Origin: Amphiscolops sp. MND2022
Lineage: Eukaryota
Assembly: GCA_964187785.1 (NCBI GenBank)
Contig: OZ076415.1
Location: forward strand, 27,094,001 to 27,158,000
Length of the DNA stretch: 64,000 nucleotides
Reading direction: 5' to 3'
The notes beneath the pieces are model-generated. The model had not been told where the DNA came from. It did no database searches and worked only from the letters and a program-made list of their open reading frames with translations. The translations under genes were made by a program, and so were the position numbers. Positions 5,119 to 37,200 of the stretch are shown one piece after another (the stretch's first letter is position 1; every line of letters starts with the position of its first letter).

Positions 5119-6599
5119 TTAAACAAGGAAATTAAAAGTATGAATAGACCAAAAGTCACAGTTTACGGGAAGAAAAATCTGGCTCTCCAAGTTTACTGGC
5201 AGAAGTGACTTTCGATATTCTGTGAATTCGTGTTTAACTTTGCTGAATAGATTTTCTGCTATGTTGGATGTTGGTGGATCCATTTTAGGTTTCCAAATTC
5301 GGCTTTTGTTTTTTGTTCTTTTTGGAAAGAGCTCAATCGGCCAGAGATTGTCGCACTTCATCGGTTGTTCAACCACTTCGCCTGCTAAAACCTTCGAAGA
5401 ACTTTTTTGTTCGTTGTTCAACGGTTCCAGATTGATGTTTTTTGAAAGTGCCAGTTCAAAGTTTGGTGACTTAAGACGTCCATTGCAGGCCAAGAGCGAT
5501 TGTAACTCGGGATACGATATAAGCAGCTCATCAAATAAATTTTTTGCATCTGCAATGTCACACGTAACCTCTTGTAATTTTTTGTTGACTGATTCAAACT
5601 CTTTCAGTTGGCTCATCACAGTTCGAATAGTGATTGAAACTGTAGCAGTTGGGAGACGTTCAGCCAGCTCCGACTCTGCACTGTCAATAAATTCAAGAAT
5701 ATGCAAAAAACGGTGATACATGGCAAATGTTGAACTCCACCTAGTATTGTTTCGTGTCTCAGGTCGTAAATGTGTTGATTCTCGCAATTTAGCAGATTGC
5801 TTCAAAGAACTAAGCTTCTTCAATAAGTATGTATTTTTGTAGTGGTTAGTGTGTGAGATTCTTCAATTTTCTGCACTGCCAAGTTCAACCGATGACTGTA
5901 GCAGCCAATCATCGGAACTTTAATTAGGTCTGCGACAGCTTGGTTAGTATTTTTGTTGTCGGCTACAAGAAAAATAATGTCGTCCATCGTTTTGCCGAAA
6001 ATCTCGAAAGTGAAAGTAATGAAATTAACCTGGCACTGTGCTGATAGTCAGTTCCATCCAGTAATGGGGAAAATAACAAAAACGGCGTTTTCGCTGGCTG
6101 TTTTCGTGGTTCTCGTAAACAGCAAAATCTGCGAGGTAGTGTGTAGACGTTTCCATATCTGACCATCCGTCGATGAGAAAACCGAATTTGGAAGGTAATT
6201 TTTGAGAACTTTTCTTCTCGACAGATTTTGTTACTTTTTGCATATAACCAACCAGTGTATGACGTTTTATTGGTCCTAGCTTGATGTATTTTTTCTAACA
6301 ACCTGTTTGTCTACCATGCTAAACGGATGGCCTCCGGTAACAATCAAGTCGATCCAGCCATGCAAGTTTTCCGCTTTCTGAGTAACTGTTCCAAAGAGGC
6401 TGTTATATGTCACTGAAGTCTCATGATCCTGTTTTTCCTTTTCGTAGTTCGGGTGGCACTGTCGTACGTGGCTCATGAGGTTTATGTAGCCTTTTTTGAT
6501 GTCTTGTTTACACGACGATCCACAGCGACATTTGAATGAATTCTCTCCGATTTTTGTGAAGAAGTAATCGACTGTAGCTTTAGTTGTTAAACCGGACAT
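5119..6599 (-). mobile_element. hAT-like DNA transposase pseudogene (BED finger plus C-terminal dimerisation-like motif)
   Basis: N-terminal YFF...FKCRCG...GYINLMSHVRQCH (BED-like); FGFLIDGWSD (catalytic D region); C-terminal PPTSNIAENLFS...RKSLLPVNLESQIFL..NCDFW; frameshifted across ORFs 6276-6701, 6025-6243, 5119-5823. TIRs not found. Confidence 0.8.
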
Positions 6600-6729
6600 T
6601 TTATGACGTGGTAGCGCTATGCTTTTGTGCGATGTGTTTACACAAAGAGTGGCAGCTAGTCTAGTGTGAAAACCGCAAATCGTTCTATTTGCTTGGCTCA
6701 TTCTGATTGGCTGAGCGATTTTACGGTAT

Positions 6730-7303
6730 GGAACCAGTTTGTAGAAAACCAGTTTGTAGAATACAGTTTGTAGAAAATTGAGGCCCAGTTTGTAGAATTT
6801 TTTTCTACAAACTGGATTCTACAAACTGGTTAGGTCCATTTTGTAGAATACCAGTTTGTAGATTTCTGGAATTGAAGAATAACAGTAAGACAAATAATGT
6901 TGGAAAGATGCATAATATAAAACGTGCCTCGAATATATTCCCATTTCCTCTAGTGCCCCGCGGCCCCTTGGGGCCGCTTATGCTCCCATCTTGCTAAGCG
7001 ATGTCGAACAGGAGCAAAGACCTAGCAAAACCGGAGATCGCGAAGCAATCGTAGTTGGAGCTGGTCCTTACGACGGTGAGGGCGAGCGTGCATAGACCGG
7101 ATATGCCTCAACTTTCAGTTTTTCCATCTTTTTCCTTTAGGCCGTGGAGCTCTCAGGAGCTTGTGTGAAGGATGTCCAGTTTGTAGAATTTGAATACCAG
7201 CTTGTAGAATTTAATGATGCAGTTTGTAGAAAAAATATATACAAACTGGACCACCAGTTCCAGTTTGTAGAATTTCTACAAACGGTATTCTACAAACTGG
7301 ACC
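6730..7303. mobile_element. Foldback-type MITE with CCAGTTTGTAGAA repeat arms
   Basis: Direct and inverted copies of (C)CAGTTTGTAGAA at 6732-6865 and 7175-7303 flank a unique centre; no TSD found. Confidence 0.7.
6928..7107 (-). repeat. 180-bp GC-rich structured core (copy 1; copy 2 at 20800-20979)
   Basis: About 18 mismatches in 180 nt versus 20800-20979; invariant GCGGCCCC-TT-GGGGCCGC hairpin. Confidence 0.9.
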
Positions 7304-7305
7304 TA

Positions 7306-7412
7306 ATGTTGTTTGGATCAAAACATCCTCTTTTCTTGTGTTCACTTCGATTTTGCGGAGGCTTTCGACACTGTGCCTCATGATCTTCTCATCAAAAAGC
7401 TCCCGTCTTTCA
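7306..7412 (+). pseudogene. Short LINE RT fragment
   Basis: Close match to ~10092-10190 (CLDQNIPFSCVYFDFAKALDIVPHALLNKKLLSF region). Confidence 0.75.
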
Positions 7413-10400
7413 CAACATAGTTTCATATTATGATATGAGTGTTCAAAACTCAAAACAAGGAACCAACTCCTGAAGTGCCGTTGCAAAATGCTCATGCAAA
7501 AAAGTGGCGAAGGACGATGACCATCAGGGATTGGATGCCATGGATGTGTGAAATAGTTTCATGGCCAATGTGTCTCACTCTCGGACAATGAAGTCAAATG
7601 GTTGGGCTCCAGAATGAGCTGCCTCTGGATGTGCGATGCCTGTCTTGAAAGCAACTCTCCGATCCTACCCGAAGCTTAGTCTCTTTCATTACGAAATGAT
7701 AACATAACGACCTATTTCAAATCCATCAGTGTTAAAATCGATTCTTTTCGTGAAGTTGTTTCGAAACAAAACTCCAAAAACTTGGCAGATTCTCCTGCTA
7801 ACAAATCTCAACTAAAAGTTGTTGTGGAAAAAAGTCGAGAGGAATCATTGCCAGAGGTTATGGCAAAATCTTTCAAAGACTCTTTTAATACGACTGTTTC
7901 GAATAATGATCGGCCTCAAAATATTGTATCCCCCAATGACCAATTTATTATCACTGGAGTACCCGGAGCCATAGGTCCCTTATCTGATCTCCACGAATCT
8001 GACTCCAGTCGTGTGAATAATATTATTAGTTTTCTGAATGAAAAGTCAGAGGGCAATATCAAATCCATTCGTCCACTCGGCAAAAGGAAAAACAAAACTG
8101 ATACCAAATTGTCCTCAAAATTGTGGCAAAGACCTTTACTGGTAACATGTGAAAATGACAGTGGTTGGTTTATGGAAAGATGCTTCCAAAAGAGCTACAA
8201 ACTCCAACAATTCTATTATCCTGTATAACTGAAAAAAAGTTTCTCCATTCAGCTGAGAGGTCACTTGAGGAAAAAGTTCTATGCAAACGTTATTTAATGA
8301 TCCATGGAGAAAACGCTAACAAGCATGACTTCAAAATCAAAAACTTGATTTTCTATTATAAAGAAAAAGAAGCTAAGATTATTGATAAATGACCTTCTGT
8401 CCTAAATGCCGCTGTCATAAACTGTCAATCTCTGAAAAATTCATCTAAACAACAAAAACTAAAGCGTCTAATCGTAGCCCATGATATCAAACTTTTACTT
8501 CGGTGCGAAACCTTTCTACATTCTGATATAAAGACCTCTGAAGTCATACAAGGTTCCTGTTTTAAAGAGATTGACCGTACTGATTGCAACAAAGGGGAAC
8601 ATGGTGGACTACTGATTGTTCCCAACCTATATTATCCAGCAAAATTTACTGATTTCTCAATTTTGAAATTCTGCAAATTTAGCTTGGGCTGTTTAGTCAC
8701 CTTTCGCAGTTCTTGTTCTATGTATGTATTAATCTACAACCCTCAATCAGGTTCACCATATAGAGAACCCTACTCATTAATAGTGGAATGTCTCCAGGTA
8801 TACATAAGCGAATTCCAAACTCTCTGCTCGGTAAATGGCATACAATAATTCTCTGACAACGTGCACTTTGTCGGTGATTTTAATTTTCCAGGAATTGACT
8901 GGAAAACCCTGAAGGGATCAACATCTCATGAAAATGAAGTCATTGTTTTTCTGTTAGATCTGCATCTAACGCAATTAGTTACGGAAAGGACTCATATAAA
9001 TGGCACCACCCTTGATCTTGTCTTTACAAATTGCCCTGAAACCTTTTATTTTGTCCATTCTGAAAAATTTTACCGATCGTTTTCCGCTAGTTGTTTACAC
9101 ACGGAAAAACTCCCTTGAAATGCTACAGTTTCTTCCAACTAGCAAACAATACAGTGGATCCTCTTTAAGTCTGACAATATTCAACGAGAATCCTAACCCA
9201 CTTTATTGTTTCCTTTCCAAATGTTTCGCTTTTCTGCTCAATTTTGTCGAGATGTGGTCATGAAAAAATCACTGTCAAAAAACGTAAAAAGTGCCAATTA
9301 TATCCATATTCCTTCTCATCTCATACTATCCACCTAGTATATTGTAAAAACACTTTACGAAAAAATTGGATAAAAATTTGAATTCCTCTTATGCAGCTCT
9401 TTTCAAAATCTGTGAACAAAATCTATCTCTCCCCATTGAATTAGATAAAGCTGCTTTCGTTGAAAACCTACATTTGAAAGATTCTAATCATTGTTTCAAG
9501 TTATTACGGTCTCTTAATGCAAAAAGAGGCTTACCACATACGCTCAAAACTGGTGATAATACATCAACTGACGATTTGTCGAAATGCAAACTGCTAAATA
9601 AATGTTTTGCCCCCGTTTTCAAACCAGCTACTCTGATAAACGTTGATGACATGGTATATCCTGAAAACGTTGAAATTCGTTGGACGACCTCGATATTAAA
9701 TTAGGAACTATCGTATCCCTCTGAACACTTGCTGACGACTCAACTGCTTGTGCTTCCGATGGCATTCCTTGTTTTGTGCTTAAACATACTGGCTATCTTT
9801 TTGCACCTGCAGTACAATATCTGTTTTTCTCAATCACTCAATCTTGTGGCTGGCCTTCTGAAAAGAAATTGGCTTGCATAACCCTCTGCATATGTCTGGA
9901 TCTATTTCTTGGGTTTCTAACTACCGGCCAATCAGCATTTTACCATGTGTTTCACTTAATCTAAAGAAAATACTTTTCGATCATATTTATCCTCGTGTCA
10001 GAGCTAAAAGCGTTGAATCACAATTCGGTTTTATGACTAAGGGAAATACAGTAACCCAACTGATTCACTATCTCGATGCCCTGTATGATTGTTTGGACCA
10101 AAACATCCCCTTTTCTTGTGTTTACTTCGATTTTGCTAAAGCTTTAGACATTGTGCCTCATGCTCTTCTCAACAAAAAGCTCCTGTCTTTCGGTTTCGAA
10201 CAAAATATCACAATGTTACTTGCCTCATATCTCTCGGACTGCCCATTATGTGTTCGCTCTGATGACATTAGCTCCAGCATTCTTCCCATAACTTCGGTAG
10301 TACCACAAAGCAGTACCGTGGGTCCCCTGTTGTTCCTCCTATTTATAAACGACTTACCCTCTGTTATTCAATACACATATGATTTTTTCTTTTCAGATGA

Positions 10401-11252
10401 CCTCAAACTGATCGCAATGCTACCCAACATTGAAACCCAAATGGATATCGACAGTCTACTACAATGGGCTGATGATAACGGAATGGAGTTTAATACTTCA
10501 AAGTTGAAGCTTTTTACCTGCTCAATTTCAAAGCAACCTTCGGCGTTACGCCTTGGAGAATACCTTGGAGAATTCGTTTCCGTTGATCAATTATTGGGTT
10601 TAGGTGTCCTGATACCATAAGATTTAAAATGGAAAGATCACATCTCAAAAGCAATCCAAAAAAAGGTCAAAACGTTTCTTTTTCTCAGACGTGTATTACC
10701 TCTAGTCCATCAACTGGAAAGAAGTTAAGGTTGTATGAAACGTTAGTTCTGAGTATCCTTTTATTTTCTTCACCTTGTTGGGCCCCTTGTTGTTTAAGAG
10801 TACAGTTTTTGGAAAACTTCCAGAAAAAAGTGCTTCAATGGATCTGTGCTGGCCTGGATTTTGAACGTACTTTGGGAAGATTGGATCTCCTTCCGATTTG
10901 TTATCAACTTGTTCGGGCCGATGTCATTCTTCTCTGGAAAAAAGTGAACAAACGTGTCGATTTCCATATTGCGATGCCTCTGAAGCAAAAATGTAATCCA
11001 ACCAGAAATTCACTTGATCTTTTTGAAATCAGCTACTCCTCAAAGTAGAAATCCATAGGAAAATTTTGTATTCGTGCTCCGTGGATAAGCAATGTGTTAC
11101 TTGCAGACGAAGTCATTGACTTTATTTGGCAGCGGTAAAAATTCAAACAAGCACTTTCTGAATATTTGAAACATCTGACTAGAACAAAGTTTAACTACAA
11201 CAACATGTGTACCTATCATGTGAAATGTAGATGTTCTTTGTGTCATTCCTGA
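7413..11252 (+). mobile_element. Degenerate CR1/L2-type LINE (PHD ORF1; APE endonuclease + RT ORF2)
   Basis: ORF1 PHD remnant IGCHGC..FHGQCVSL..WMCDAC (~7480-7650); APE motifs VGDFNFPGIDW and THINGTTLDLVFTN (8861-9100); RT YRPISIL, QFGF, YFDFAKALDIVPH, VPQSSTVGPLLFLLFINDLP, FSDD (9874-10620); Cys-rich end CTYHVKCRCSLCHS* at 11252. Confidence 0.9.
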
Positions 11253-13499
11253 TATCGTATTTCTTTTCTAAATATATATATCTTTCAAACATGTAAATGC
11301 ATCATTCATACGTATTGTTGTTTACGCTTCCTGTCTTCAGCGAATTGAGTCTTTTACTACTACTAATTCGGTTTTACACAACAAAAGCATCGTCTTGCCA
11401 CCTTTATTGTGTGAGGTAAATTACCCAGCGTTCCTTTATTGTAAGGACTTTTATGAAAAGACACCCAGACACACTTTATAATACTTGAAAAGAGTTCCTA
11501 AAACTTCACGGATCCTCCTAGCTGAAAACTTCATACCCAAAACTAATAATATTTGTGAAACCCCGTTAAATATTGCCTTGTGGTGCTTACTGTTCTCCTT
11601 TCTAAGGTATTTTTTGGAGAAACTGCTTCGAGGAGGGCAACTTCAGCGGTCATCACTTAGTGCAATTATCAACAAGCGTATTCGGGATGATGTCATTGAG
11701 AAAAAACCGAAACGCTACAGAAAACAGCAGGAGAAAAGCGAGTTAGATTGACGACTGCGTTCCATTTGCACTAAATTAGACGAAGGTAATGTTAAGGCCG
11801 GAATCAGAATGGCAGTCGGCGACGACAAGATTGCAGATTTCACGGTCGACAACTACGCTGCCCTTAAGCTGAAACATCCGCAGAGGGGAACTTGCTCTGT
11901 TCCGGACCCCACAGATATCGATTGTGTTTCAACCTCGGAGTTTTTGTCCACAAGGCTCTCATGTCCTTCCCCAACGGCTCTAGTGCAGGGTTGGATGGCA
12001 TTTCGCCCCAAACTTTGAAAGATTTGACTGCCAAGTCGAACGGGCAAACTGGACCGAATTTTCTCAGAGTCTTAACAAATCTTGTGAATGTGATTCTCGA
12101 AGGAAAAGTACCTTTTGAACTTCGGCCGTACTTCTTTGGTGCGAAACTGATTGCGCTAAAAAACTCCAATGGAGGACTTCGTCCTCTCGCTATAGGCAAT
12201 ACTTTCCGCCGATTGTCCGCAAAATGTGCCGGATACCATGTCTTCGAATCACGTCAAGCAAGATATGGAAAATCGACAAGAAGGTGTAGGTACCAAAAGG
12301 GGCGCTTAATTGGCCTCACATGTTTTCTGTTGTTTGATAGAAAGCCCTCAGCCCAAAGAAAACGTAATTTTGAAAATTGACTTCGAGAACGCTTTCAATT
12401 CGATAAACCGGCAATTCATGCTAGAGAAAGTTTTTGAAAAACACCCTGAAGTTTTTAAAGATTCACACTCGGCCTACAGTTAGCCAAGTTTTCTTTTTTT
12501 ACGGTGATTCAGTACTCAAATCTTGTGAAGGGACCCAGCAAGGAGACCCTGAGTCTCCAGTTTTGTTTTCGGATTCCATTCAGGATCTGATTGACAGTTT
12601 GGAGTCGAAAATAAACTTATGATACCTAGACGATGGAAATTTAAGTGATGATTACCGAACTGTTTTGAAAGATCCCAAAAAAATTGTTGATGCGGAAAGA
12701 ACGCTGGGACTCAAATTTAAACCCACGAATTGTGAATTTTTTTCCCTGGTGACATCATTGAAAAACGACGATCGACTACTTTAGATTTTTTCCAAAAACG
12801 TTGCCCCGGGATCGAAACACCAAAGAAAGATAAACTTATCATTCTTGGTTCACCGCTCGGCCCGAAATCACAAGCAGACTTATTGGAAAGGAAAATAATG
12901 AACTGGACAAAGTTAAAGGGATTGTTGAAAAACTAGATGCGCACTATGTTGAAAAATAGCTTCAGTTTGCCAAAGTTGTTGTACTTCCTGAGAACCAGTA
13001 CATGTTTTAATCATCCAGCTCTCTTGGAGAAAAATGGCAAAACCGTGCGCGACAAACTTTCCAAACTTTGTAACGTGAACGTCGACGATATTCCGAGTAC
13101 TCTGCTGGCTCTGCCCACTAACATGGGTGGTCTTAGGGTGTCAACCGCATCATTCGTAGCACTTCCCTCTTTTTTGGCCTCATGTTTTGGTGCGAGTGTG
13201 ACTTTCTCACGACGACTTTCTCGGAAACATTCGAAGATGTTTCGTTTACAAAAGCGCTTGAGAAAGGTTGAGTTTGACGAGTGAACAGGAATGTCCTCTC
13301 GGTGGAACCCAAAAAAAAATTGGACACAACCTGTCTTCGTCAGAAATGCCCAAGAGTTGATTTCTAGAAAGGATGACAGACGTTCGATAGTTTTCAACGC
13401 TCACCAAGGTCAATTCGGGTCTCAATGGCTGAACGTCGTTCCTTGCAAGAACAAAGGCCTGAAACTTGAAGATCAGCAACTTCGAGTTTCAATTGGTTT

Positions 13500-13848
13500 G
13501 GGTGGCTTCAAATAGGTCTAATTTTTCTGGTAGAAAGGACATAGGTCGAACCTTTTGATCGAATTGCAGGGATTGAATGGAATGCGGTCGAATTTTATCG
13601 TATTTGTTGTATGGCACGGTCGCTTCGCTCCCTTCGCCAAGTAGCAACATCGAGGTATGGCCATATGGCACGTCGCTCCGCTTCGCTTCGCTCCTGCATT
13701 CAGGGTACTAGGGGTATGTTAACATATCTGACCAGGTTATAAAAATTTCGATCCGAGTTGTTTCGATCCTATTCAAAAATTTGGTATGTCTACCTGAGAA
13801 TTAACTCTGATTTTCGATCCTGTTCCTTCGACCTATTTCCGCCCACCC
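13500..13848. mobile_element. Mutator-like MITE (GGGTGG TIR family), inside CRE copy 1
   Basis: Imperfect 19-bp TIR GGGTGGCTTCAAATAGGTC / GACCTATTTCCGCCCACCC; interrupts ISIGL..GANIC coding; homologous to 21541-21890. Confidence 0.85.
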
Positions 13849-14610
13849 GGTGCCAACATCTGCGTAGGGCATACGTGCCACTGTGGTAAAAGTTGAACGG
13901 GACGGTTTACACGGTCTTTCTTGCACCAAGAGTGCTGGTCGCTTCTCACGTCATGCTATTCTCAATCCTCTCATGAAGCAGTCGTTGGGATCTCTGGACT
14001 TGCCTTCAATGCTCGAACCGCGTGGACTGCACCGAATTGATGGCAAACGCCCAGACGGTGTTACCATGGTTCCTTGGGAAATGGGTAAACAGCTGGTGTG
14101 GAATGTCACGGTTGTGGATGGATGCTCTTGCACCCAGTCGCCTGAATCAAGGCTCTTTATGCAACCCGGGAACCACCGCCACCGAGGCTGAAGCGCGTAA
14201 AATGGAGAAGTATCGCGAATTAATTGACTATGGATACATTTTTTAGCCGGTGGCCTTGGAAGTACAGGGTTCTTTAGGCGAGAGCAGTGAAATTTTCATC
14301 ACGCGTCTCTGTGAAATGCTCTGTCGTTTGCACGACGATCAACAAGCTGGCAATGGCTCCTCAGATCGGCAGTGCGGCCTGTGTTCTAGGAACTGTGAGC
14401 GACAGAGTTGCGTTCGAAGAAATTTATTACATATAGCCTAATTTTTTTGACCTTTATATCAAAGCAGCTCTAAAAAAAATTCCATCGGTTGACTGCATAG
14501 TGGCTGGTTTGAGTAGTTTGTTGGTTGTTTTTTTTTGTTACTGGTATAGTGGCTGGTATGGCGTTCCCTACTTTCGTTGCAGACCACGGGTGTGTGTCTT
14601 CTTCCCCAAC

Positions 14611-14660
14611 ATGATGATACACATGGCACTTGATTGATGACGAAGATCCATGATATCTGA
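14611..14660 (+). ncRNA. C/D-box (snoRNA-like) module, type A
   Basis: Box C ATGATGA 14611-17, D' TTGA 14630-33, C' TTGATGA 14634-40, box D CTGA 14657-60; weak TTCC/GGAA terminal stem. Confidence 0.4.
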
Positions 14661-14676
14661 TAGAGGAAAAAAAACC

Positions 14677-15335
14677 TTTATGGAAATGCACCTTACCTTA
14701 TCACCCAGCTATGGAAAAGGCGCCGACTAAAAATAGAAAATACTGATTCATTTCATCTTCATGGCATAGTTTTTCGAGTACGTGGAATATTTAATGTTCG
14801 CTTCACTACTTTCAGAATCTGATGTTGGTTGAAGTGTATTCATGTGGTCAGAGAGTATGAAATCGTAGTGTTCTCACTGATGGCTTACGTTTTGTTGAGA
14901 CTATGGAGCTATTTTTCTGGTCGAGGTTGGTTGTAAATTTTGAATGTCATACGGTCCTATGCTCACAGCGTATCACATTCTTTTCTGAAATGGTTGCTTT
15001 GTTGAGGACATTACGTGGTAATTCAAATAGCTGAAAATGAAAAGTTATCAAACAGCAAACAATTTTTATCGGGCCTAGTGATAAGCTGGAATTCGATGTC
15101 GCGGATATTGTCAAAATTTTTACTGAAACGTCGGCTATGTTCACGTACCCCTGAAGCGCAAAGTCGAAATTCCGAAAAGCGAATTCCAGAAACTTCGAAT
15201 CATGAAATATGGTGCTCGTCTGGCAATACATTGCTAATCATGTTATTCAGTTACAGCAATTAGAATTGAATCATTTGACGACAGATTGCAATTTCAATGC
15301 GCTACTTTTCTGAATTATTTTCTCTCTATTCACGA
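14677..15335 (+). repeat. Near-identical duplicate of the ARL5 upstream region, exon 1 and start of intron 1 (22159-22817)
   Basis: Direct alignment by eye shows only scattered substitutions over ~660 bp. Confidence 0.95.
14880..14925 (+). pseudogene. ARL5: Duplicated ARL5 exon 1 ([15 protein letters not shown]; G2A and S6L)
   Basis: ATGGCTTACGTTTTGTTGAGA... versus ATGGGTTACGTTTTGTCGAGA...; donor G|GTTGGT intact; not followed locally by exon 2. Confidence 0.8.
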
Positions 15336-16422
15336 CGCTCAAATTTAAAAAGTTTTTGAAAAACACCCTGAAGTTTTTAAAGATTCACACTCGGACTACA
15401 GTTAGCCAAGTTTTCTTTTTTTTTACGGTGATTCAGTACTCAAATCTTGTGAAGGGACCCAGCAAGGAGACCCTGAGTCTCCAGTTTTGTTTTCGGATTC
15501 CATTCAGGATCTGATTGACAGTTTGGAGTCGAAAATAAACTTATGATACCTAGACAATGGAAATTTAAGTGATGATTACCGAACTGTTTTGAAAGATCCC
15601 AAAAAAATTGTTGAAGCGGAAAGAACGCTGGGACACAAATTTAAACCCACGAATTGTGAATTTTTCTCCCGGGTGACATCACTGAAAAACGACGATCGAC
15701 TAATTTAGAATTTTTCCAAAAACGTTTCCCCGGGATCGAAACACCAAAGAAAGATAAACTTATCATTCTTGGTTCACCGCTCGGCCTGAAATCACAAGCA
15801 GACTTATTGGAAAAGAAAATAATGAACTGGACAAAGTTAAAGGGATTGTTGAAAAACTAGATGCGCACTATGTTGAAAAATTGCTTCAGTTTGCCATAGT
15901 TGTTGTACTTCCTGAGAACCAGTACATGTTTTAATCATCCAGCTCTCTTGGAGAGAAATGGCAAAACCGTGCGCGACAAACTTTCCAAACTTTGTAACGT
16001 GAACGTCGACGATATTCCGAGTACTCTGCTGGCTCTGCCCACTAACATGGGTGGTCTTAGGGTGTCAACCGCATCATTCGTAGCACTTCCCGCCTTTTTG
16101 GCCTCAGGTTTTGGTGCGAGTGTGACTTTCTCACGACGATTTTCTCGGAAACATTCGAAGATGTTTCGTTTACAAAAGCGCTTGAGAAATGGTTGAGTTT
16201 GACGCGTGAACAGGAATGTCCTCTCGGTGGAACCCAAAAAAATTGGACACAACCTGTCTTCGTCAGAAATGCCCAAGAGTTGATTTCTAGAAAGGATGAC
16301 AGACGTTCGATAGTTTTCAACGCTCACCAAGGTCAATTCGGGTCTCAATGGCTGAACGTCGTTCCTTGCAAGAACATAGGCCTGAAACTTGATGATCAGC
16401 AACTTCGAATTTCAATTGGTTT

Positions 16423-16771
16423 GGGTGGCTTCAAATAGGTCTAATTTTTCTGGTAGAAAGAACATAGGTCGAACCTTTTGATCGAACTGCAGGGATTGAA
16501 TGGAATGCGGTCGAATTTTATCGTATTTGTTGTATGGCACGGTCGCTTCGCTCCCTTCGCCAAGTAGCAACATCGAGGTATGGCCATATGGCACGTCGCT
16601 CCGCTTCGCTTCGCTCCTACATTCAGGGTACTAGGGGTATGTTAACATATCTGACTACGTTATAAAAATTTCGATCCGAGTTGTTTCGATCCTATTCAAA
16701 AATTTGGTATGTCTACCTGAGAATTAACTCTGATTTTCGATCCTGTTCCTTCGACCTATTTCCGCCCACCC
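16423..16771. mobile_element. Mutator-like MITE (GGGTGG TIR family), inside CRE copy 2
   Basis: Near-identical to 13500-13848 at the same position. Confidence 0.85.
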
Positions 16772-17532
16772 GGTGCCAACATCTGCGTAGGGCATACGTG
16801 CCACTGTGGTAAAAGTTGAACGGGACGGTTTACACGGTCTTTCTTGCACCAAGAGTGCTGGTCGCTTCTCACGTCATGCTATTCTCAATTCTCTCATGAA
16901 GCAGTCGTTGGGATCTCTGGACTTGCCTTCAATGCTCGAACCGCGTGGACTGCACCGAATTGATGGCAAAAGCCCAGACGGTGTTACCATGATTCCTTGG
17001 GAAATGGGTAAACAGCTGGTGTGGAATGTCACGGTTGTGGATGGATGCTCTTGCACCCAGTCGCTTGAATCAATGCTCTTTATGCAACCCGGTAACCACC
17101 GCCACCGAGGCTGAAGCGCGTAAAAAGGAGAAGTATCGCAAATTAATTGACTATGGGTACATTTTTTAGCCGGTGGCCTTGGAAGTACAGAGTTCTTTAG
17201 GCGAGAGCAGTGAAATTTTCATCACGCGTCTCTTTAAAATGCTCTGTCGTTCGCACGACGATCAACAAGCTGGCAATGGTTCCTCAGATCGGCAGTGCGG
17301 CCTGTGTTCTAGGAACTGTGAGCGACAGAGATGCGTTCGAAGAAATTTATTACATATAGCCTAATTTTTTTGACCTTTATATCAAAGCAGCTTTAAAAAA
17401 AGTTCCACCGGTCGACTGCATAGTGGCTGGTTTGAGTAGTTTGTTGGTTGTTTTTTTGTTACTGGTATAGTGGCTGGTATGGGGTTCCCTACTTTCGTTG
17501 CAGACCACGGGTGTGTGTCTTCTTCCCCCAAC

Positions 17533-17582
17533 ATGATGATGCACATGGCACTTGATTGATGACAAAGATCCATGATATCTGA
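17533..17582 (+). ncRNA. C/D-box module, type A (duplicate)
   Basis: ATGATGA 17533-39 ... TTGATTGATGA ... CTGA 17579-82. Confidence 0.4.
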
Positions 17583-18077
17583 TAGAGGAAAAAAACCTTA
17601 ATGGAAATCTGCCACTGTGGTAAAAGTAGCCTAATTGTTGTGATGGACTTGTTGAATGGCTTCAGAGATGGCAATGATTTGAATTTGAGACAACTGGACA
17701 ACATCTCTGACGCTGTTTTGTTGGCTTGTCGCTGCACTTGGGCTGAAAGATCTATCACAACCCGGTAAGATAGTTCTATTTGTATTTCATTTAGTCAAAT
17801 TGAGGCTCAGCGTTTCTACCGGTCTACTGGGATAGTGGCTGGTATGAGTAGTTTTTTGGCGTTTTTTTTAAATGTTATATTTCATTAATTTTAATTTTAA
17901 CTTATCTTTTTAACAAATCAAGTCTCCAGATTTTTCGATGGCTTTAGAAACCCCCAGCCCGGTTTTCCCTTGTTTTTCTCCATCCTCGTTTTTGGTCGTT
18001 TTGTCTCCCCTCTGAAAATGAGCATTGTAACACGTGTCGTGTGCAGTGCCTGAACCATAAATCGTAGGCTCTGAAAA

Positions 18078-21000
18078 ATGTCCCGGAGAGGAATCAATAA
18101 GTTCTGCTCCGCCCAAAAATGTTGTAAACCCTCTGGCAGAATTTTCTGGGTAGGATGTTCAAAATGCCGTAAATGGTTCCATATCAAGTGTGTGGGTAAT
18201 ACAAAAAAGCAGTCGGAGGAGGAAGATTTTTTCTGCAGACCTTGTCAAGTTGTGGATACGGGTGCTCCACTGCCGCTTACTGTTGATACTCTAATAGCTG
18301 TCACTAAAGCAAACCCCACCATTCTAAAACGAGTACCCAAACACGCACGCATTCCATTAGCGAAGCTTCTCAATGAAGCGCTTGATGGCATAGTAGCAAA
18401 GCCACACGATAAATCGTGCTGGGTGAGTTTCTTTTTTCAATTTTGCGCTATTATGAAACAACCAAACGATCTGGCAAACGACAGAAATCTGATCTGGGGA
18501 GTATCATATGCGAGAGAATCAACAAAGGTGCAGCTCTTGGCGATCTTGTCGTCCCGCGTGAAGTGAAGGACTCTAAACTCGAGCAAGAATGCGAAAAAAG
18601 GATCAAGTTGATCTCCGCCAAGCTCGATGAGGGGAACGTCCGAGCGGGAATAAGACTAGCAGCGTCTGACGACTCAGTAATTCTTGACAACAACACTTAC
18701 GAAAAACTTCAGTCGAAACATCCTCTCGAGCCCCAAATCATGCCCAACAAAATGCCGAAGATAGCCTAATTACGTTTGAACCCATCGTAGCGAAGGCAAT
18801 CAACTCCTTCCCTTCTGGGTCTTCGGGAGGACCAAGCCTACTTGTGCCCCAGTTGTACAAAGACCTTATCGCGAAGAGCAACGGGTCCGTAGGAAACGAG
18901 TTTCTCCAGAAGCTAACAAGCGTACTAAATATTGTCTTGGAAGGCAAAGTCCCTGTAGGTTTGAGACCTTTTTTCTTTGGTGCTAAACTTATCGGTCTTC
19001 GGAAAAAAGACGGCGGAATTCGACCAATTGCTGTTGGAAATACCCTGCGTCGAATATGCTCGAAATGTGTGAGCTCTTTCGCGACTGACCAACGACGAAT
19101 TGATTTCCATGGTACGCAGTTTGGCTGCGGAACAAGTCGTGGAGCTGAAATCGCTGCACATGTTTTTCGAAACCTCATTGAGAACGAGCAGAATCCTGAA
19201 AACGTTATTCTAAAGATGGACTTCAAAAATGCTTTTAACTCGCTGAAACGTGACAAAATCTTAGACACCGTTTTCCGAAACGACGCCAGATTTACAATTA
19301 TACGCACTCTGCATATAGCGAATCCTCACATCTTTTCTTCGGAGAGAAAGTTATTCAATCGCAAGAGGGCTGTCAGCAAGGGGACCCTGAAGGCCCAGCT
19401 CTCTTCTCCGACACTATTCAAGACCTCGTTAACCAAATGGTTTCACAATATAATGTTTGGTACCTCGACGACGGAAACATTTCGGATGACTATCGGAAGG
19501 TTCTTGAGGACCTCAAACGAATCATCGCTAGCGCCGACGAGTATGGGTTATCACTCGAGAAAACTAAATGTTACCTGATTTTCCTTAGAAATTGTACCGA
19601 AAGTTCAAAAAAAAGAATCAAAACGCTTTTTGACGAAATTTTCCCGGGTATTAAAGTGGAGGATCGTGAGAATTTGGAAATTTTAGGGTCGCCAATGAGC
19701 GCAAGTACTCGACGAGACCTGTTGAACAAAAAAATGATTGAATTGCAAAAAAATATCTGAAGTCGTTACGAAATTAGATGCCCACTATAGTTTCTACTTG
19801 TTGAAGAACTGCTTTAGTCTACCTAAACTAGTCTACTTTCTTCGTACCAGCCCTTGCTTTGAAGAGGTGGACCTCCTACAGCAGTATGATTCCATTATCC
19901 GCAAATCATTGTCCAAAATCTGCAATGTGAATTTTGATGAAAGCAGCTATACTCAAGCGATTCTCTCAGTCTCCAAAGGGGGCATAGGCATTGCATCGGC
20001 TTCCCAGATTGCTCTTCCTGCTTTTTTAGCTTCAGCATCGGGTGCCAAACGTGCTTTGTCGTGTATCCTCCCGGAAGACTATGTTGATGCATCGTTTGAA
20101 AAGGCTCTGGATTTATGGTTGGCGAGGGCGAACCTGACAGAAGCACCGTCGGACTCCATTCAAAAACATTGGACCTCTCCTCTGAGCGATGCTACTTTTG
20201 ATCAACTTATTACAGACCTTGATGCGGAAAATGTCAAAAGGCTGAATGCTTATCAAGACCACTTTGGTTCAGCTTGGCTGAATGTTGTACCAAGCAAAAA
20301 CCTCGGTCTGAAGTTGACAGATCAGCAACTGCGCATCTCCTTATCCCTCCGCCTGGGATCGAAAATTTGCGAGAAACACATTTGCCGCTGCGGTAAACTT
20401 GTCGAAGAGAACGGACATCAGTGCCAGAAGCGCGGGACTTTTCTCGAGGCATCACAACCTCAACTCTCGTGAAACAGGCGCTGAGTTCCATCAAAGTTCC
20501 CTCAATTTTGGAACCATATGGTCTGACCCGAACAGATGGAAAGCGCCCAGATGGAATTACCCTAGCGCCCTGGGAGGTAAATGGTCACTTGGCTTAATGC
20601 CATTTGGCTTAAAGTCATTTGGCTTAATACAATTGGTCACTTGGCTTAAGTTTTTTAAGCTAAGTGTCTCGGGTATTGGTCACTTGGCTTAAAGTCATTT
20701 GACTTAAAACCACTTAGTTGAAAACACGTGACAGATTTTCTCGAATTTATCTTTATAACGGAATCAGCGTATTAATTTAACATGTCATATCAAGTACCCC
20801 TCGGATATGTCCCCATTTCCTCTAGTGCCCTGCGGCCCCTTGGGGCCGCTTATATTCCCATCTTGCTAAGCGAGGTCGAACAGGAGCAAAGACCTAGCGG
20901 GAACGAAGATCGCGAAGCGATCGTAGTGGGAGCTGGTCTTTGCGACGGTGAGGGCGAGCGTGCATACACCGCATATGCCGCACATTATGGTATTTCCGGG

Positions 21001-21514
21001 AGTTGACATATTTATTCCTCGAGTTGGAACGGAGTTGGCTTAATTTTGTGGTCACTTGGCTTAAAATTTTTAAGCCAAATGACTCGACGAAAAAATTAAG
21101 CCAAATGGTATTAAGCCAAGTGACTGGTAACCCCCTGGGAGTAAGGCAAGCAATTAGTCTGAGATGTTACTTGTGTCGATCTCCTTGCCCCCAGTAGAAT
21201 AGAGAACGGGTCTGTTGCCAACCCAGGCACAGCAGCGGAGGATGCAGAGGAATTGAAAACGGCTAAGTACGTTTGTTTGACTGACAAAGGATACATCTTC
21301 CAACCTTTAGCCTTTGAAATTCAGGGAGGAGTCGGACCTTCTACGTCTACCTTCTTCAAAAACCTCTGTAAAAAGTTGTGCGTGTGCAATCAAGAAAATA
21401 GAGCCGGGTCCTTTTTCAGGCAGAGACTCTCTCGCAATCCAGGTAGGCAATGCGGCCAGTGTAGTTGGAACGGTTCGGGACGAAGACCACTTAAGCGAAC
21501 TTTACTACTTGTAA
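18078..21514 (+). mobile_element. Near full-length CRE-like RLE non-LTR retrotransposon, copy 3 (PHD-RT-CCHC-RLE), frameshifted
   Basis: PHD CSAQKC..WVGCSKCRKWFHIKCVG..FFCRPC; FFGAKLIGLRKKDGGIRPIAVGNTLRR; MDFKNAFNS; QQGDP; WYLDDG; LKNCFSLPKL; HICRCGK; KRPDGITLAPWE; YIFQPLAFE. Confidence 0.92.
20576..21132. mobile_element. Foldback/Mutator-like MITE with TTGGCTTAA repeat arms
   Basis: TIR GGTAAATGGTCACTTGGCTTAAT / ATTAAGCCAAGTGACTGGTAACC; TSD CCCTGGGA(G) at 20568-75 and 21133-40; removing it rejoins LAPWE with GKQLV*DVTCVD; contains the 180-bp core at 20800-20979. Confidence 0.92.
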
Positions 21515-28309: not shown

Positions 28310-28593
28310 AAAACATCCTAATATTTAAGTATTTCAAAATTTATCTTTCACTGATGGCCTCAACCATAAATCACTTCAAAGCTGAAAGTTGAAATCTTGA
28401 GGTTGAATGCCAATTTTCTATGAAACTTATTACGTGGTTGTTTTCAACTTTCGAAAATGCAAGTATTGTTATACGAGTCGAATATAGCCTAAAAGTTTTT
28501 TAGTCTGGTGCATATTCCAGCTCATAGTTTACAAGATAATTTCAAATTGTCCTTCACTCGAAATGATTGAAAACCCAATTTCAGAATAGCTTG

Positions 28594-30486
28594 ATGGCTC
28601 TGATGAAAAACTCGATTGCAATGTTGGGACGTATGTCCGGTGCCAGCCATTTGCAGAAATATTCTCGTTGTATGGCCTGGTGGTCTCACGTTGAAATGGC
28701 ACCCCTGGATCCGATCGTGGGCCTGACTGAACTTTTCAACAAAGACACAAGTCCCAAGAAAACCAACTTGGGCGTGGGTGCTTACAAGGATGAAAATGGA
28801 AAGGCTTGGGTTCTCCCTTCTGTTTTGAAAGCTGAGCAAAGTGTGATGGATGCTAAACTTGATAAGGAGTATTTGGGAATTGTGGGAGATAAAGAATTCA
28901 CGAAACTTGCCATTCAACTTGCTCTTGATTCAAAGAGCCCTGTTCTGGAAAGGACTTCCTCTGTTCAAACCCTTTCAGGTACAGGGGCTCTCAGAGTTGC
29001 TGCTAATTATTTGAAGAAGTTCCACGACAAACCGGTCTGGCTGCCTATCCCTAGTTGGGGAAATCACACACCCATTTTTGGGCACGCCGGCTTGCAAGTG
29101 AAAGGATACAGATATTATGATGATAAGACCATTGGTTTGGACATCGAGGGTATGTTGGAGGCCCTGTCTAAAATTCCCGAGGGCGATACAGTTTTGTTCC
29201 ACCCTTCTGCCCACAACCCCACCGGAGTTGACCCGACGCAAGATGAGTGGATCAGAATCGAAGAGGTTGTCCGTGACCGTAAACTACTGCCCTTATTTGA
29301 CATGGCCTACCAAGTACGTTTATGCTTTCATTCTGTGTACGATGCAAATACCAATATATGAAATCAAGTTTTTGAAACTTAGTTTCACTCTTTTTGCTTT
29401 TTTTCAATTTTTGTGTGGAGTTGAATGCAATCTCAGCGTGAAAATTGATTACATGTAGAAGTTTTCGTTTCTCTGGGCACCGTGTCTTTCCTCTTCGAGA
29501 TGACGATGACTCATCTCAAGTTATGATGCCATGACTCATTTCAAAGCATGGCTGAAGCAAAAATTGAGCCTTTCATTTCGTTTCAGGGTTTTGCCAGTGG
29601 TGACATTGAACGAGATGCTTTCCCAGTGAGGCATTTTGCATCACATGGTCATCAGTTTATTCTGACGCAGAGTTTCTCCAAAAACATGGGGCTATACGGA
29701 CTCAGAGTTGGTGCTTTAAGTTTTGTCTGTGAAAGTGCCGATGAAGCTCAACGAGTGGAATCACAAGTTAGTTTGAGACTTTTGATTCATTTAGGCTGCT
29801 GTTAATAAATTTCGAAAACTGACAAAATTGACTCACATTTTTTCAGAAGTTTTTGTTTTTGCCTCATTTTTCAAATTTTTTTTATAAAGAAAAGATTAAG
29901 ACTTGAATTCGTGTTCGTATAATAAATTGAACGTAGACGTCACTAGAAGTGAAGAAGTTGAATGAGTCGATGTATGAATTGTAAGATAAACGGTCATCGT
30001 ACTCAACTTAAACGTATTCAATGATAAACCATGTTTTAAAACTATATGGTGATTGTTTTGTTCAAGACTACTATCTCTTGTGCTCGATACTAGATGATTG
30101 CTGTTTCGTTTCAGGTCAAGATCATTATCAGACCAATGTACAGTATGCCGCCTAGTCATGGATGCAGAATTGCCAAGACGATTTTGAGAGACGACGCTTT
30201 GCGATCTGAATGGATAACAGACGTGAAAACGATGGCCAATCGCATCATTGGAATGAGACATTCACTAGTAGACGGTCTTAAGGCTGCAGGTAGCTTGAAA
30301 GACTGGTCCCATATCAGCAGACAAATCGGCATGTTCTGTTTCACCGGTCTGTCTCCCGAACAGGTTATGAAAATGCGGGAAGACTATTCCATCTACATGA
30401 CCAAAGATGGTAGAATTTCAGTCTCTGGCTTGAACGCAAACAATGTCGAGTATGTGGCAAATGCTATTCATGCCGTCACCAGGTGA
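28594..30486 (+). CDS. GOT2: Mitochondrial aspartate aminotransferase
   Basis: Exons 28594-29313, 29587-29766, 30115-30486 (423 aa); N-terminal presequence-like segment then WWSHVEMAP, NLGVGAY, AHNPTG, DMAYQGFASG, PLP lysine SFSKNMGLYG, QIGMFCFTG, TKDGRIS. Confidence 0.96.
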
Positions 30487-34246: not shown

Positions 34247-37200
34247 ATGATAATGGACAGCTCACTGAAAACTAACTTCTATTCCCAGCTAGTGGAACGA
34301 TGTCTCAAGAGCTCACAGCTCAACATAGTCAATTTTTCTTTCCCAGATGAGCTCAAGAAGTTTTCTGACGTGGAACTCAAGAACGCATGTGAACAAGCAA
34401 TGAGAGATGCGTTATTCTCTAATGTCCAGTTGGGTCGCCTTGGCCAATCTGGATGTCTGGGGGTTATCCAAGTGTCTATTAGTCTAGTGCAGAGTTCGCA
34501 TTGCGCGCCTAATCTGCCCTTCATTCTCCTGGAAGACATGTTCGAATGTATAACAGTACCTGAATGCGAGACAGCATTCTCTTTCGTGGAAGACAACATT
34601 GAAGGTTAGCAGTTGGGGTGCCCCGTGTTTCTATGTCTCCCTTACATCGCAGTGGTTTTCTACAGACGTATCAACTCAAAACATGTGACCTGTGGTCCGG
34701 GTATGACGGAGCTAGCGGAAAATCACCCTAGAGACGACTCTAAGTCATCGTTTAACCTTTCAATTAGATCGTATAGTTTCTTCAATGAGACTACTAAGAG
34801 TACTGTTTTATATTCAATCGCAGATGACTTCTTTCTTCGACGAAGTAGTGTTATGTTTCGGAATACGCAAGTTGGTATTCCAAATAGGGTTTTGAAGTGT
34901 GAGGTGCGTTGCGTCTTTGAAGAGGAGCATCACAGAACGGATCTTGTTTCAGTTTGGAGACGCGAATCGATGCTACAGGCGGGCAAGAATTATCTCCTGA
35001 GAATGTGCAACAATCTTCTTCGCAGACTATCTACGTCCCGAAATACCGTTTTATGTGGCCGCATTCATCTATTCTTGGCTCATTTGCTGCCTCTGGACGA
35101 GAAAAGTGCTTTGAACATAATGGGCGCTTTCAACCTCGATAACATCACAATTTTTGGCAACGAAGCCCCCGAGGAAAAGACAACCGATGACAAAGCAATG
35201 TAATATTCATTCGAAACCTTCGAATTTGACCTTTTGATGTGAAAGTTTTGACATTTTCAATTACCCCCATTTTTCTTCGGTTGGAGTAAATTTGTTTCTA
35301 AATTCATCTCATAGTATTGTGAAAACACGTCTTGAGAGCTCAAATTAATCATGTCGAAATTTCGAGTGATATATCAGACCGACTTCTGTTGCGTCTATTT
35401 GACCCATTTCGAATTAAATATAAAGATGTTATTAGTGTTATTGGATGTATGCCCAGAAATGTTCATTCATGGATTGGGAACCCTGAAACCCATACATTCT
35501 ATTTATCCTTATTGTTTCGCAGGGAAGTTGATTCCAACGAAGTCAAAGAAAACGGCGATATTGGGAAGAAAGCTGAGCCAGCTGTGGATTATGCACTTTA
35601 CAAGAAGTTTTGGTCCTTGCAAGATTTTTTCCGTAACCCCAACCAATGTGCAGAGCGAGAGAAGTGGTTACTTTTTGCCAGTAATGCTGCCGCTGTGCTC
35701 AAAGTATTTTCTCAACACAAGTTGGAGAATGTGGCAATGAAGAAAAAACCAAACGAGTCGTCTGAAGCCATGGAGACAGAAGATGACAATATTCAAGTCT
35801 ATTTCGCAAAAAATTTAACCAGGTAATTTTCATTTGTTCCAATGTGTTGTCTGATTTCTGGTATTGGTTCTGTGAACGCTGGAATATTGTTGAAACCTGA
35901 TTGCTGTACCTTTCCGTCTGTGCAATTGACTGAAATTTGTTCTGAGAGTTGCCTTTGACGGTAATGCGATAGTAATATTAGTCCAAAAAGTATCCCACAT
36001 TCACTCTTTCATATTTCTAAGTAAGTTGGAATTTCATCTATATTTTTTTTCAAGCAAGGTTACTTAATTGTTCAACACGATTGCCAACCATCATCTGTTA
36101 TTACCAATTATTCACTGAGAGCTTTTAAAGTAGTGAATGCGGAAATGCAGTGGAAAGCGAGTTCATATTTTACGTATAGTTTAATTTTTCAGTTATTGAA
36201 GTACCAAAACTTTTAGTCCAAGATTGTGATGCTTTCAGTGAACCATATTCGGTTTGCACTCTTGCAAAATCTACCTGGAGTTGAAAGATGTTCATTTTTT
36301 AAAAAATGTTTCATCCCCAAAATGTGAGGAAATGATGTATACTTCGTGAAATTTTCGGAGTTGTAGAATTTCACTGAGCCCCAAAGGGGCTGAATTTGGG
36401 AGACTAATTATTCGCTGAGATCTTACCCCTCCCAAATAACGCCTCATGAAATCAATCGGTACTCCTCGACCATATGATTATAAAACTGGACACTTAAGAT
36501 CACTTTAGCTTGGAAGAGGAGTGCCGATTAATTGTTTTGTTTAATTTTGACTGGAGAATTATTGAATTTTTTTACTTGCTGATGATTTTATTTAATGGAG
36601 CTTATTTGAAATATTTGGACGATTCTCTGCTTTTCGGTGTGTGTGCGTGAATCTACCGGGAAGTGGTAATGAACCCCGAAATATCTCTTAGGGAACAATC
36701 ACGCGTTATTTGAAAATAATGGAATGTAAAAACAGATGAATCAATTTTCTTAATGCTGAAGGACTTTGACTAAGATCATATTCTTGTCTGTAGTTTTCCT
36801 TGCAATCTTTCAATCTTACATGGTTCAATACATTTGTATCGCGCCCTGTAATTGCACACTGCACAGAATACTTCACGATAAAAAAAATCACGGAGTCGTA
36901 TGGTTAGTGATTAGAACTTTGACTTGGGAAGCCAAAGGACGGGGTTCGAATCCCACTCAACAAAAAGTTTTCGAATCGAATTATTTAAATTATTTTCGAT
37001 TATAACGTATATAAAGTGATATAATCAGGATATAACCTCAATATTTCGGATGTAGTGCAATTTTTCCACCAATCAGGCGGAGATTGAGACTATATTAGTG
37101 ACATTTTTAGTCGGCGCTTCATGGAGTGAAACGCGACTATTATAGTGACTTTTTTTCTGTCCACACGAACTGACCAAAATAGTTCTTAAAAGTTCTACAA

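Follow-up and report, generated by a model that had tools for sequence, protein, structure and literature searches.

A stretch of 64,000 nucleotides from Amphiscolops sp. MND2022 (contig OZ076415.1, positions 27,094,001 to 27,158,000; hereafter, the window) contains two foldback MITEs (miniature transposable elements with inverted repeats) that differ in their arms and share nearly the same centre. This centre, the core, recurs outside the window within at least seven types of arm. The core is a real, somewhat unusual transposon feature, and probably represents a recombining central domain of non-autonomous, Merlin-like MITEs.

Only the ends of cut-and-paste transposons are thought to matter in cis, and a near-identical interior of ~190 bp across families and species is therefore unusual. 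It points to either frequent exchange of modules between MITE lineages, or an internal sequence that boosts amplification.

Two copies of one core

A gap-free alignment pairs window positions 6927-7110 with 20797-20982; over its 184 nt there are 19 mismatches, an identity of 89.7%. An initial annotation of this DNA had put the identity at ~90%. The shared block, from CCTCGGATATG to CCCCACAT, is ~187-190 bp long, slightly more than the 180 bp first noted, and in each case forms the middle of a foldback element of ~560 bp. Within the window, the 18-nt palindrome GCGGCCCCTTGGGGCCGC is found only at 6960 and 20832, against an expectation of 0.01 chance matches. An 11-nt direct repeat, ATATGyCCCCA, is present at both ends of the core.

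6927..7113, plus strand: core copy 1, decayed, with private changes that include GCAAAACCGG, GCAATC, CCTTAC and TAG
6960..6977: hairpin H1 of copy 1, GCGGCCCC-TT-GGGGCCGC
20799..20985, plus strand: core copy 2, with a single difference from the consensus of its family (F2, below)
20832..20849: hairpin H1 of copy 2
20886..20943: nested palindrome of copy 2, a 9-bp stem GCAAAGACC/GGTCTTTGC plus 3 extra pairs
20908-20922: inner stem GATCGC-GAA-GCGATC, enclosed by the nested palindrome of copy 2
20962..20978: GCATA/TATGC stem with a variable loop, in which position 20972 is family-diagnostic

The structural description in the initial annotation proved accurate. All four of its stems, including the invariant hairpin, are present, and they are perfect in copy 2. 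Copy 1 has three stem mismatches (two in the 9-bp stem; one in GATCGC/GCGATC), each of which reads as A-C on the plus strand and G-U on the minus strand, as had been claimed. The claim that a GC hairpin lies 6 nt before CTAG on the minus strand likewise holds for both copies. The private sites of copy 1 retain the consensus in other copies of its family.

One core, many arms

Core-bearing DNA was obtained through the sequence surrounding "proteins" derived from an open reading frame (ORF) that crosses the core. This yielded eight loci (L001-L007 and L011) in a public ENA assembly; L004 and L005 are apparently two versions of one region. Comparison by blastn against fetched loci gave ~25 further copies of the core, about one per 6 kb. 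Exact-pattern scans for the core in metagenome contigs (two scans), viral contigs (two) and prokaryotic genome contigs (one) gave zero matches, and a full-text literature search with the hairpin sequence found no match.

The flanks in the eight fetched loci place the same core within at least seven arm types, each with its own motif; one additional context could not be classified by its arm.

F1: CCAGTTTGTAGAA
F2: TCACTTGGCTTAA
F3: GAGATCGAA
F4: CCATATTGCTTAA
F5: TTCGAAT
F6: TTAGATCTGA
F7: GCCGAAACGTC

The two window elements belong to F1 and F2, and their arrays of CCAGTTTGTAGAA (6732-7306) and TCACTTGGCTTAA (20576-21132) are absent from the rest of the 64 kb.

6726..7308, plus strand: element 1, a foldback MITE of family F1 whose arms carry CCAGTTTGTAGAA
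6732..6866: left arm of element 1, eight copies of the 13-nt motif in the order + + + + - - + +, spaced 14-15 bp apart
7171..7306: right arm of element 1
20576..21132, plus strand: element 2, family F2, a 557-bp MITE with termini GGTAAATGG...CTGGTAACC
20576..20720: left arm of element 2, with TCACTTGGCTTAA and CCATTTGGCTTAA motifs in an F1-like layout
21035..21132: right arm of element 2
20568..20575: left 8-bp target-site duplication of element 2, CCCTGGGA
21133..21140: right 8-bp target-site duplication of element 2, CCCTGGGA
L001 5553-6062: a further F1 copy, with flanking repeat CATTTTGCC
L004 ~11002-11470: a further F1 copy

Between arm and core lie inner flanks, and these are distributed as a mosaic. 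When the 110 nt to either side of the core were aligned locally, with shuffled sequence as the control, F1 and F5 proved to have a common right inner flank (score 101, versus 15 +/- 2 for the control), as did F4 and F6 (134, versus 16). On the left, the flank AAGTATAAAACGTG is common to F1, F5, F6 and F8, and the length of one left inner flank that is retained differs among families: 0, 11, 14 or 34 nt. The inner flanks of F1, F2 and F3 show no more similarity than shuffled sequence, and an F1-F2 homology suspected by eye was thereby ruled out. One locus holds an outright chimera: at L007 1689-2110, an F2 left arm and inner flank are followed by the core and then directly by a terminal F1 arm. 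In L004, an F2 element adjoins a truncated, inverted core.

The core itself varies little. Family consensuses differ at about four positions (~97-98% identity), and individual F2 copies stand at a mean distance of 2.7% from their own consensus, similar to the difference between families. Between most families, the surrounding sequences do not align.

The initial annotation regarded the arms of the two window elements as unrelated. This view did not survive comparison with further families. The F1, F2 and F4 motifs have the common skeleton yCAnnTnGnnnAA, and F4 bridges the other two: its variant CCATTTTGCTTAA matches the F2 variant CCATTTGGCTTAA at 12 of 13 positions, and the F1 variant CCATTTTGTAGAA at 10 of 13. 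All three families also have the same arm layout, with three direct copies at 15-bp spacing that start ~9 nt from the end, a fourth copy ~22 nt farther on, and then inverted copies. Shared skeleton, spacing and layout make the F1, F2 and F4 arms look like diverged versions of one putative transposase-binding array. The motifs of F3, F5, F6 and F7 do not look like these.

Several further arrangements were noted in the fetched loci. Three core-bearing elements occupy 2.4 kb of L001 (3652-6062): a complete F2 element (duplication CTAAGTTC) nested in a longer F2-ended element (duplication GTTGACAA), and an F1 element ~220 bp beyond the nested pair. This arrangement suggests clustering or nesting of these MITEs. 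The near-identical contigs L004 and L005, probably haplotypes, differ by an insertion of ~96 bp inside an F3 core, just after GCAAAGACCT (L004 14594-14810; L005 14605-14728). A (TAC)n microsatellite lies within the long right inner part of an F4 element (L004 16140-16155).

Abundance and edges of the core

Contigs from four public runs were aligned to element 2. In the best-matching run, that of organism A, 16,563 contigs match it, and the summed depth is 2-4.6 million over the core versus 0.4-0.7 million over the arms, a difference of about fivefold. The contig alignments place sharp edges at 20799/20801 on the left and at 20977-20988 on the right. The commonest left flank, ...AAAGTATAAAACGTG (170 contigs), resembles that of copy 1; the commonest right flank, ACCCCATATTAGGTGGGG... 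(104 contigs), resembles neither window copy. Thus the flanks of window copy 2 are not the commonest, and other types are more frequent.

The core also occurs in three other organisms, whose contigs carry the same alternative flanks; one of these contigs has 5 differences in 167 nt. Only positions 20831, 20854 and 20906 within the core vary in more than ~5% of contig depth, and only about four (20831, 20854, 20906 and 20972) are polymorphic above ~15%. The sharp boundaries in thousands of contigs, the seven or more arm types and the chimera bear out the initial proposal that the core is a module in elements with different ends.

Cores also suffer recurrent internal deletions of 20-90 bp, centred on the nested 9-bp/6-bp palindromes:

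window 20868-20949: core deletion (contig joints)
L004 11248-11376: core deletion
L007 1909-2070: core deletion
L004 7906-7990: core deletion

Those of 42-80 bp cluster on the large nested palindrome. This position fits, and suggests, slippage or instability driven by hairpins at the level of DNA.

Target duplications, termini and superfamily

Four clean F2 insertions have 8-bp target duplications: CTAAGTTC, GCTTGAGC, CCCTGGGA and GTTGACAA. Target duplications were also read for F3 (AAAAAAGC), for F4 (GTTTTTCAT) and for the F1 element in L001 (CATTTTGC(C)). Four clean cases measure 8 bp, and one measures 9 bp. Termini begin with 5'-GG at both ends in F2 (GGTAAATGG / GGTTACCAG), F3 (GGCGGTGCG / GGTGGGGTA), F4 (GGGTACAAG / GGCTTCAAG) and a further family (GGTGGGTGG / GGTGGGCGG).

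Merlin elements, in the account of Feschotte (2004) as relayed in PMC8101967, make 8- or 9-bp duplications, and have a conserved terminal 5'-GG and terminal inverted repeats (TIRs) of 24-462 bp. The duplication lengths and the terminal GG are both found here, and the arms fall in the same TIR length class; the difference from Merlin is that no Merlin transposase was found near these elements. We provisionally assign them to this superfamily, which fits their ends better than Mutator/Foldback, hAT or Helitron.

To our knowledge, a shared central domain is not a described feature of Merlin. Foldback elements and Mutator-like elements (MULEs) typically make duplications of at least 9 bp; hAT termini start YARNG; and Helitrons end at CTRR 3' of a GC hairpin, insert between A and T, and make no target duplication. 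The Mutator-like affinity first proposed is not supported: long inverted arms of short sub-repeats around a unique centre are indeed shared with Foldback and Mutator-like elements, but the four clean F2 insertions have 8-bp duplications, a fifth case has 9 bp, the 5'-GG termini are, with these lengths, hallmarks of Merlin, and no MULE transposase is linked. Membership in hAT was rejected as well: the 8-bp duplication fits, but the termini are GG rather than YARNG, and a neighbouring hAT-like gene (below) is low-copy.

A further abundant MITE-like family, with termini GGTGGGTGGCTGTAAATAGGTCGAA...CGACCTATTTCCGCCCACC, GGTCGAA sub-repeats and GG...CC ends, was seen in the fetched loci; one copy is inserted in the right arm of an F2 element.

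L002 10330-10700: copy of this further family
L003 4190-4500: copy of this further family
L004 15250-15400: copy of this further family
L006 19977-20012: copy of this further family

A probable recombining central domain

The elements are built from arms of ~100-145 bp, each composed of a 13-nt motif in both orientations, and measure ~480-860 bp in total. In the proposed mechanism, the arm motifs would be bound by a transposase that is provided in trans, most likely a Merlin (IS1595-like) enzyme, with each variant of the arm matched to a transposase lineage of its own. The mosaic flanks and the single chimera suggest that the GC-rich core of ~190 bp passes between these lineages. It might do so through illegitimate recombination, or through template switching or gene conversion during excision-gap repair; alternatively, one element may insert within another and the composite be mobilised from its outer ends. 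Core-bearing recombinants would then amplify to high copy number, the core either aiding transposition in cis or serving as the commonest available filler. Following insertion, copies would decay neutrally with respect to pairing and strand.

The initial annotation envisaged a structured cassette, swapped between or captured by Mutator-like elements. The part of this idea that stands is the module shared across arm types; the structured RNA and the Mutator affinity are not supported.

Several observations weigh against a recombining domain of Merlin-like elements. The DNA copies come almost entirely from a single assembly, and about half were reached through an open ORF. The points at which three flank types part from the core lie within 2-3 nt of one another, which is tidier than random template switching predicts. 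Related lineages might instead have diverged over a long time under very strong selection on the core, an account favoured by the apparent homology of the F1, F2 and F4 arms. With respect to the superfamily, element 1 has no clean target duplication, and F1 has GG at its left end only, the right end not being CC. Finally, neither the 64-kb window nor the ~190 kb of fetched loci yielded an autonomous Merlin element or a DDE_Tnp_IS1595 ORF, so the superfamily is assigned from target duplications and termini.

Alternative explanations

The core might be a cis-acting transposition module in its own right, whether as a hinge of palindromic DNA, as a site for a host factor or as a small transcript. 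We consider this rather unlikely. If it were true, any Merlin-like MITE that acquired the core would become hyperactive, and this would account for the convergence of seven or more arm lineages, in several species, on the same ~190 bp; the core would then be the DNA-transposon counterpart of the central domains of short interspersed nuclear elements (SINEs).

Two further alternatives, both very unlikely, concern RNA. According to the first, the core is a small plus-strand transcription unit, with a predicted RNA of ~175 nt that has a 5' stem-loop. At the core's left edge, several families have a TATAAAA sequence 27 nt upstream of a CCATTTC that resembles an initiator:

window 6912-6950: TATAAAA/CCATTTC
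L007 1030-1072, minus strand: TATAAAA/CCATTTC
L004 11233-11270: TATAAAA/CCATTTC

A run of five Ts follows the core in F1-type elements, and these signals together could define such an RNA. Retention of the AAGTATAAAACGTG flank in F1, F5, F6 and F8 also speaks for a transcription unit, all the more in that this flank is the commonest left flank in reads and is present in two other organisms. Yet the abundant F2 and F3 families lack the TATA box, F2 lacks even a run of four Ts, and both have amplified nonetheless. No known small RNA in Rfam matches the core, no RNA run was shown to contain it, and the pattern of substitutions in 271 copies (below) is not structure-aware.

The second of these, which we credit no more than the first, is that the core is a structured RNA gene, a ribozyme or a single-stranded DNA signal, read from one strand and with its hairpins under selection. 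Near-consensus cores do fold better than shuffled sequence (z of -2.6 and -2.5 on the plus strand; -1.8 and -3.0 on the minus strand), and the decayed copy 1 folds no better (-0.9 and -0.6). The core structure consists of DNA palindromes, and is so symmetric between strands. A contig from another organism carries a compensatory-looking pair of changes, 20894 C>G and 20935 G>C, that turns a C-G pair of the 9-bp stem into G-C, and most of its other listed changes fall at unpaired sites; but a contig from the fourth organism has both H1 and the inner stem broken. The four high-frequency polymorphisms in the core are all unpaired, an outcome with a chance probability of ~6%.

Searches and larger samples argue the other way. 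Rfam 15, searched on both strands at an expect value (E) of at most 10, has no family that matches the core, a result that covers the hammerhead, HDV, twister and pistol models that the initial annotation, too, could not fit. A weak snoU54 match at the left edge of the core reached 15.3 bits against a gathering score of 35 (E = 4), and the remaining matches are chance, microRNA-like matches to the palindromic arms. For 15 copies, RNAalifold gave a covariation term of +1.36, which is no support; in the same set, 13 changes give G-U and 14 give A-C on the plus strand. The three changes that read as G-U on the minus strand are private to window copy 1.

The largest sample comprises single-nucleotide changes inferred from amino-acid differences among 271 ORF translations. 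These changes number 7.50 per paired site versus 7.11 per unpaired site, a comparison that reads decay after insertion rather than selection on master copies, dead copies decaying neutrally regardless. Single changes in stems gave G-U on the plus strand 158 times, G-U on the minus strand 143 times, and a broken pair 243 times. Double changes kept the pair in 3 of 10 cases, and partners slid by 1-3 nt did as well or better. Substitutions that ignore pairing and strand, the outcome named beforehand as telling against the original proposal, are thus what the 271 copies display. A structured RNA on the minus strand finds no Rfam match, both strands fold alike, and there is no strand bias. There is no evidence for a functional RNA.

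Slightly less credible still, the core could be a small mobile element independent of the MITEs, with ends of its own, that inserted into the centre of different ones by chance or through a target preference. Its boundaries in contigs are sharp, it outnumbers any single arm type, and the 11-nt direct repeat occurs at both of its ends. Beyond these repeats, however, shared sequence continues on both sides in all families (CCTCGG on the left; CACAT on the right), and the supposed target therefore would be the same ~19 nt everywhere. The left inner flanks of 0, 11, 14 or 34 nt constitute nested breakpoints rather than one insertion boundary, and no solo core with a variable duplication was seen in ~25 copies. 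The direct repeats also prompted comparison with a satellite monomer, as in a bivalve pearl or BIV160-type MITE; this was rejected, with no tandem cores in ~25 copies and no tandem joint among the contig joints listed.

A protein-coding origin can be given almost no weight.

20782..21006, plus strand: 74-aa ORF across the F2 core

Most copies of the core can be read through in one open frame, and hundreds of ORF calls, many of exactly 74 aa, have been made. A protein search with this ORF returned 827 clusters at 90% identity, and an exhaustive search 317 at 50%; within one public assembly the ORF was called more than 800 times. ORF calls, though, record only copies whose frame stays open, and the only diverged representative fetched came from the same assembly as the remaining core-bearing loci. 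By our own estimate, DNA of 58% GC will, about half the time, have roughly one of its six frames open over ~63 codons. Moreover, the start and stop codons lie in F2-specific flanks and the ends differ in other families; differences between the F1 and F2 window copies are mostly non-synonymous; and a Pfam search with any frame of the core gave no match. The ORF is almost certainly not a gene. As translations of a MITE, such calls have seeded hundreds of spurious "proteins" in public catalogues derived from metagenomes.

That the core is the 3' end or a fragment of a Helitron is equally remote: the GC hairpin, 6 nt and CTAG occur on the minus strand of both window copies, as the initial annotation pointed out, but in every family homology extends for at least 27 nt beyond CTAG, which makes the motif internal, and the elements carry inverted arms and 8-9 bp target duplications. 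A SINE or tRNA-like origin was also considered and rejected: ARAGORN found nothing; Rfam gave no tRNA, 5S or 7SL match; and inverted arms with fixed duplications of 8-9 bp are inconsistent with a SINE, whose duplications vary in length.

The neighbourhood of the two elements

On the minus strand at 5119-6701 is a gene with hAT/BED-like motifs; element 1 lies 120 bp upstream of it. This gene consists of several ORFs, split by introns or frameshifts, and encodes, besides GWSD and CYSHRLNL, a BED-type finger and a dimerisation-like motif at the C terminus; near 6700, between gene and element, there is a CCAAT box. With five database matches the gene is low-copy, and its relatives in other assemblies have a ZBED1_RNase-like_helical domain and no core nearby. 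As an autonomous parent of the MITEs it was rejected on these grounds (low copy number, ZBED-like relatives, no core near them), and because no matching arm lies on its far side. Most likely it is a host gene, or one domesticated long ago, rather than the parent transposon, and element 1 probably does no more than lie upstream of the promoter of a host gene.

Element 2 interrupts a long interspersed nuclear element (LINE): RVT_1 ORFs occupy 18844-20472, and the same retroelement resumes beyond the MITE. An atlas search with a LINE ORF found Cnidaria as the commonest phylum, a weak hint as to the host. Other annotated features of the window are as follows:

9874-10620 and 18078-20472: LINE reverse-transcriptase fragments, one of them preceded by a PHD-finger ORF
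28567-29361: host exon, class I/II aminotransferase
34613-35203: host exon, THO complex subunit 1

Comparison with known systems

SINE central domains (CORE, V, Deu and others) are central blocks common to families that differ in their other modules. They share with the core a centre of unexplained function and an evolution by module swapping. SINEs, however, are retroposons with heads transcribed by RNA polymerase III and LINE-derived tails, whereas the elements described here have inverted arms, fixed-length duplications and no tRNA-like part.

For Stowaway MITEs, internal sequences raise transposition frequency, as cited in PMC2872659 (its reference 9). This is a precedent for the interior of a MITE, and not only its ends, governing amplification. 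Stowaway belongs to the Tc1/mariner superfamily, and the effect there was established by experiment; here, a similar role is only inferred.

The closest precedent is provided by the CMITEs of Acropora (Wang, Zhang, Meyer and Matz 2010, PLoS One 5:e10700; PMC2872659). Six CMITE families with different TIRs share a 75-bp internal region, better conserved than the TIRs and of unknown origin, and a part in transposition has been proposed for it. No similarity links the published 60-nt CMITE consensus to the core, and our literature search found no later work on shared interiors of this type. The two systems agree in that both belong to marine invertebrates, are shared between species, number thousands of copies and conserve the interior better than the ends. 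They differ in construction: CMITEs are ~100 bp long, with TTAA duplications, CCYT piggyBac-type ends and a 75-bp interior, whereas the present elements are ~480-860 bp long, with 8-9 bp duplications, GG ends, arms of repeat arrays and a palindrome-rich core of ~190 bp. Larger, rich in hairpins and far more abundant than CMITEs, these elements would offer a better system in which to settle why unlike MITEs come to hold the same interior.

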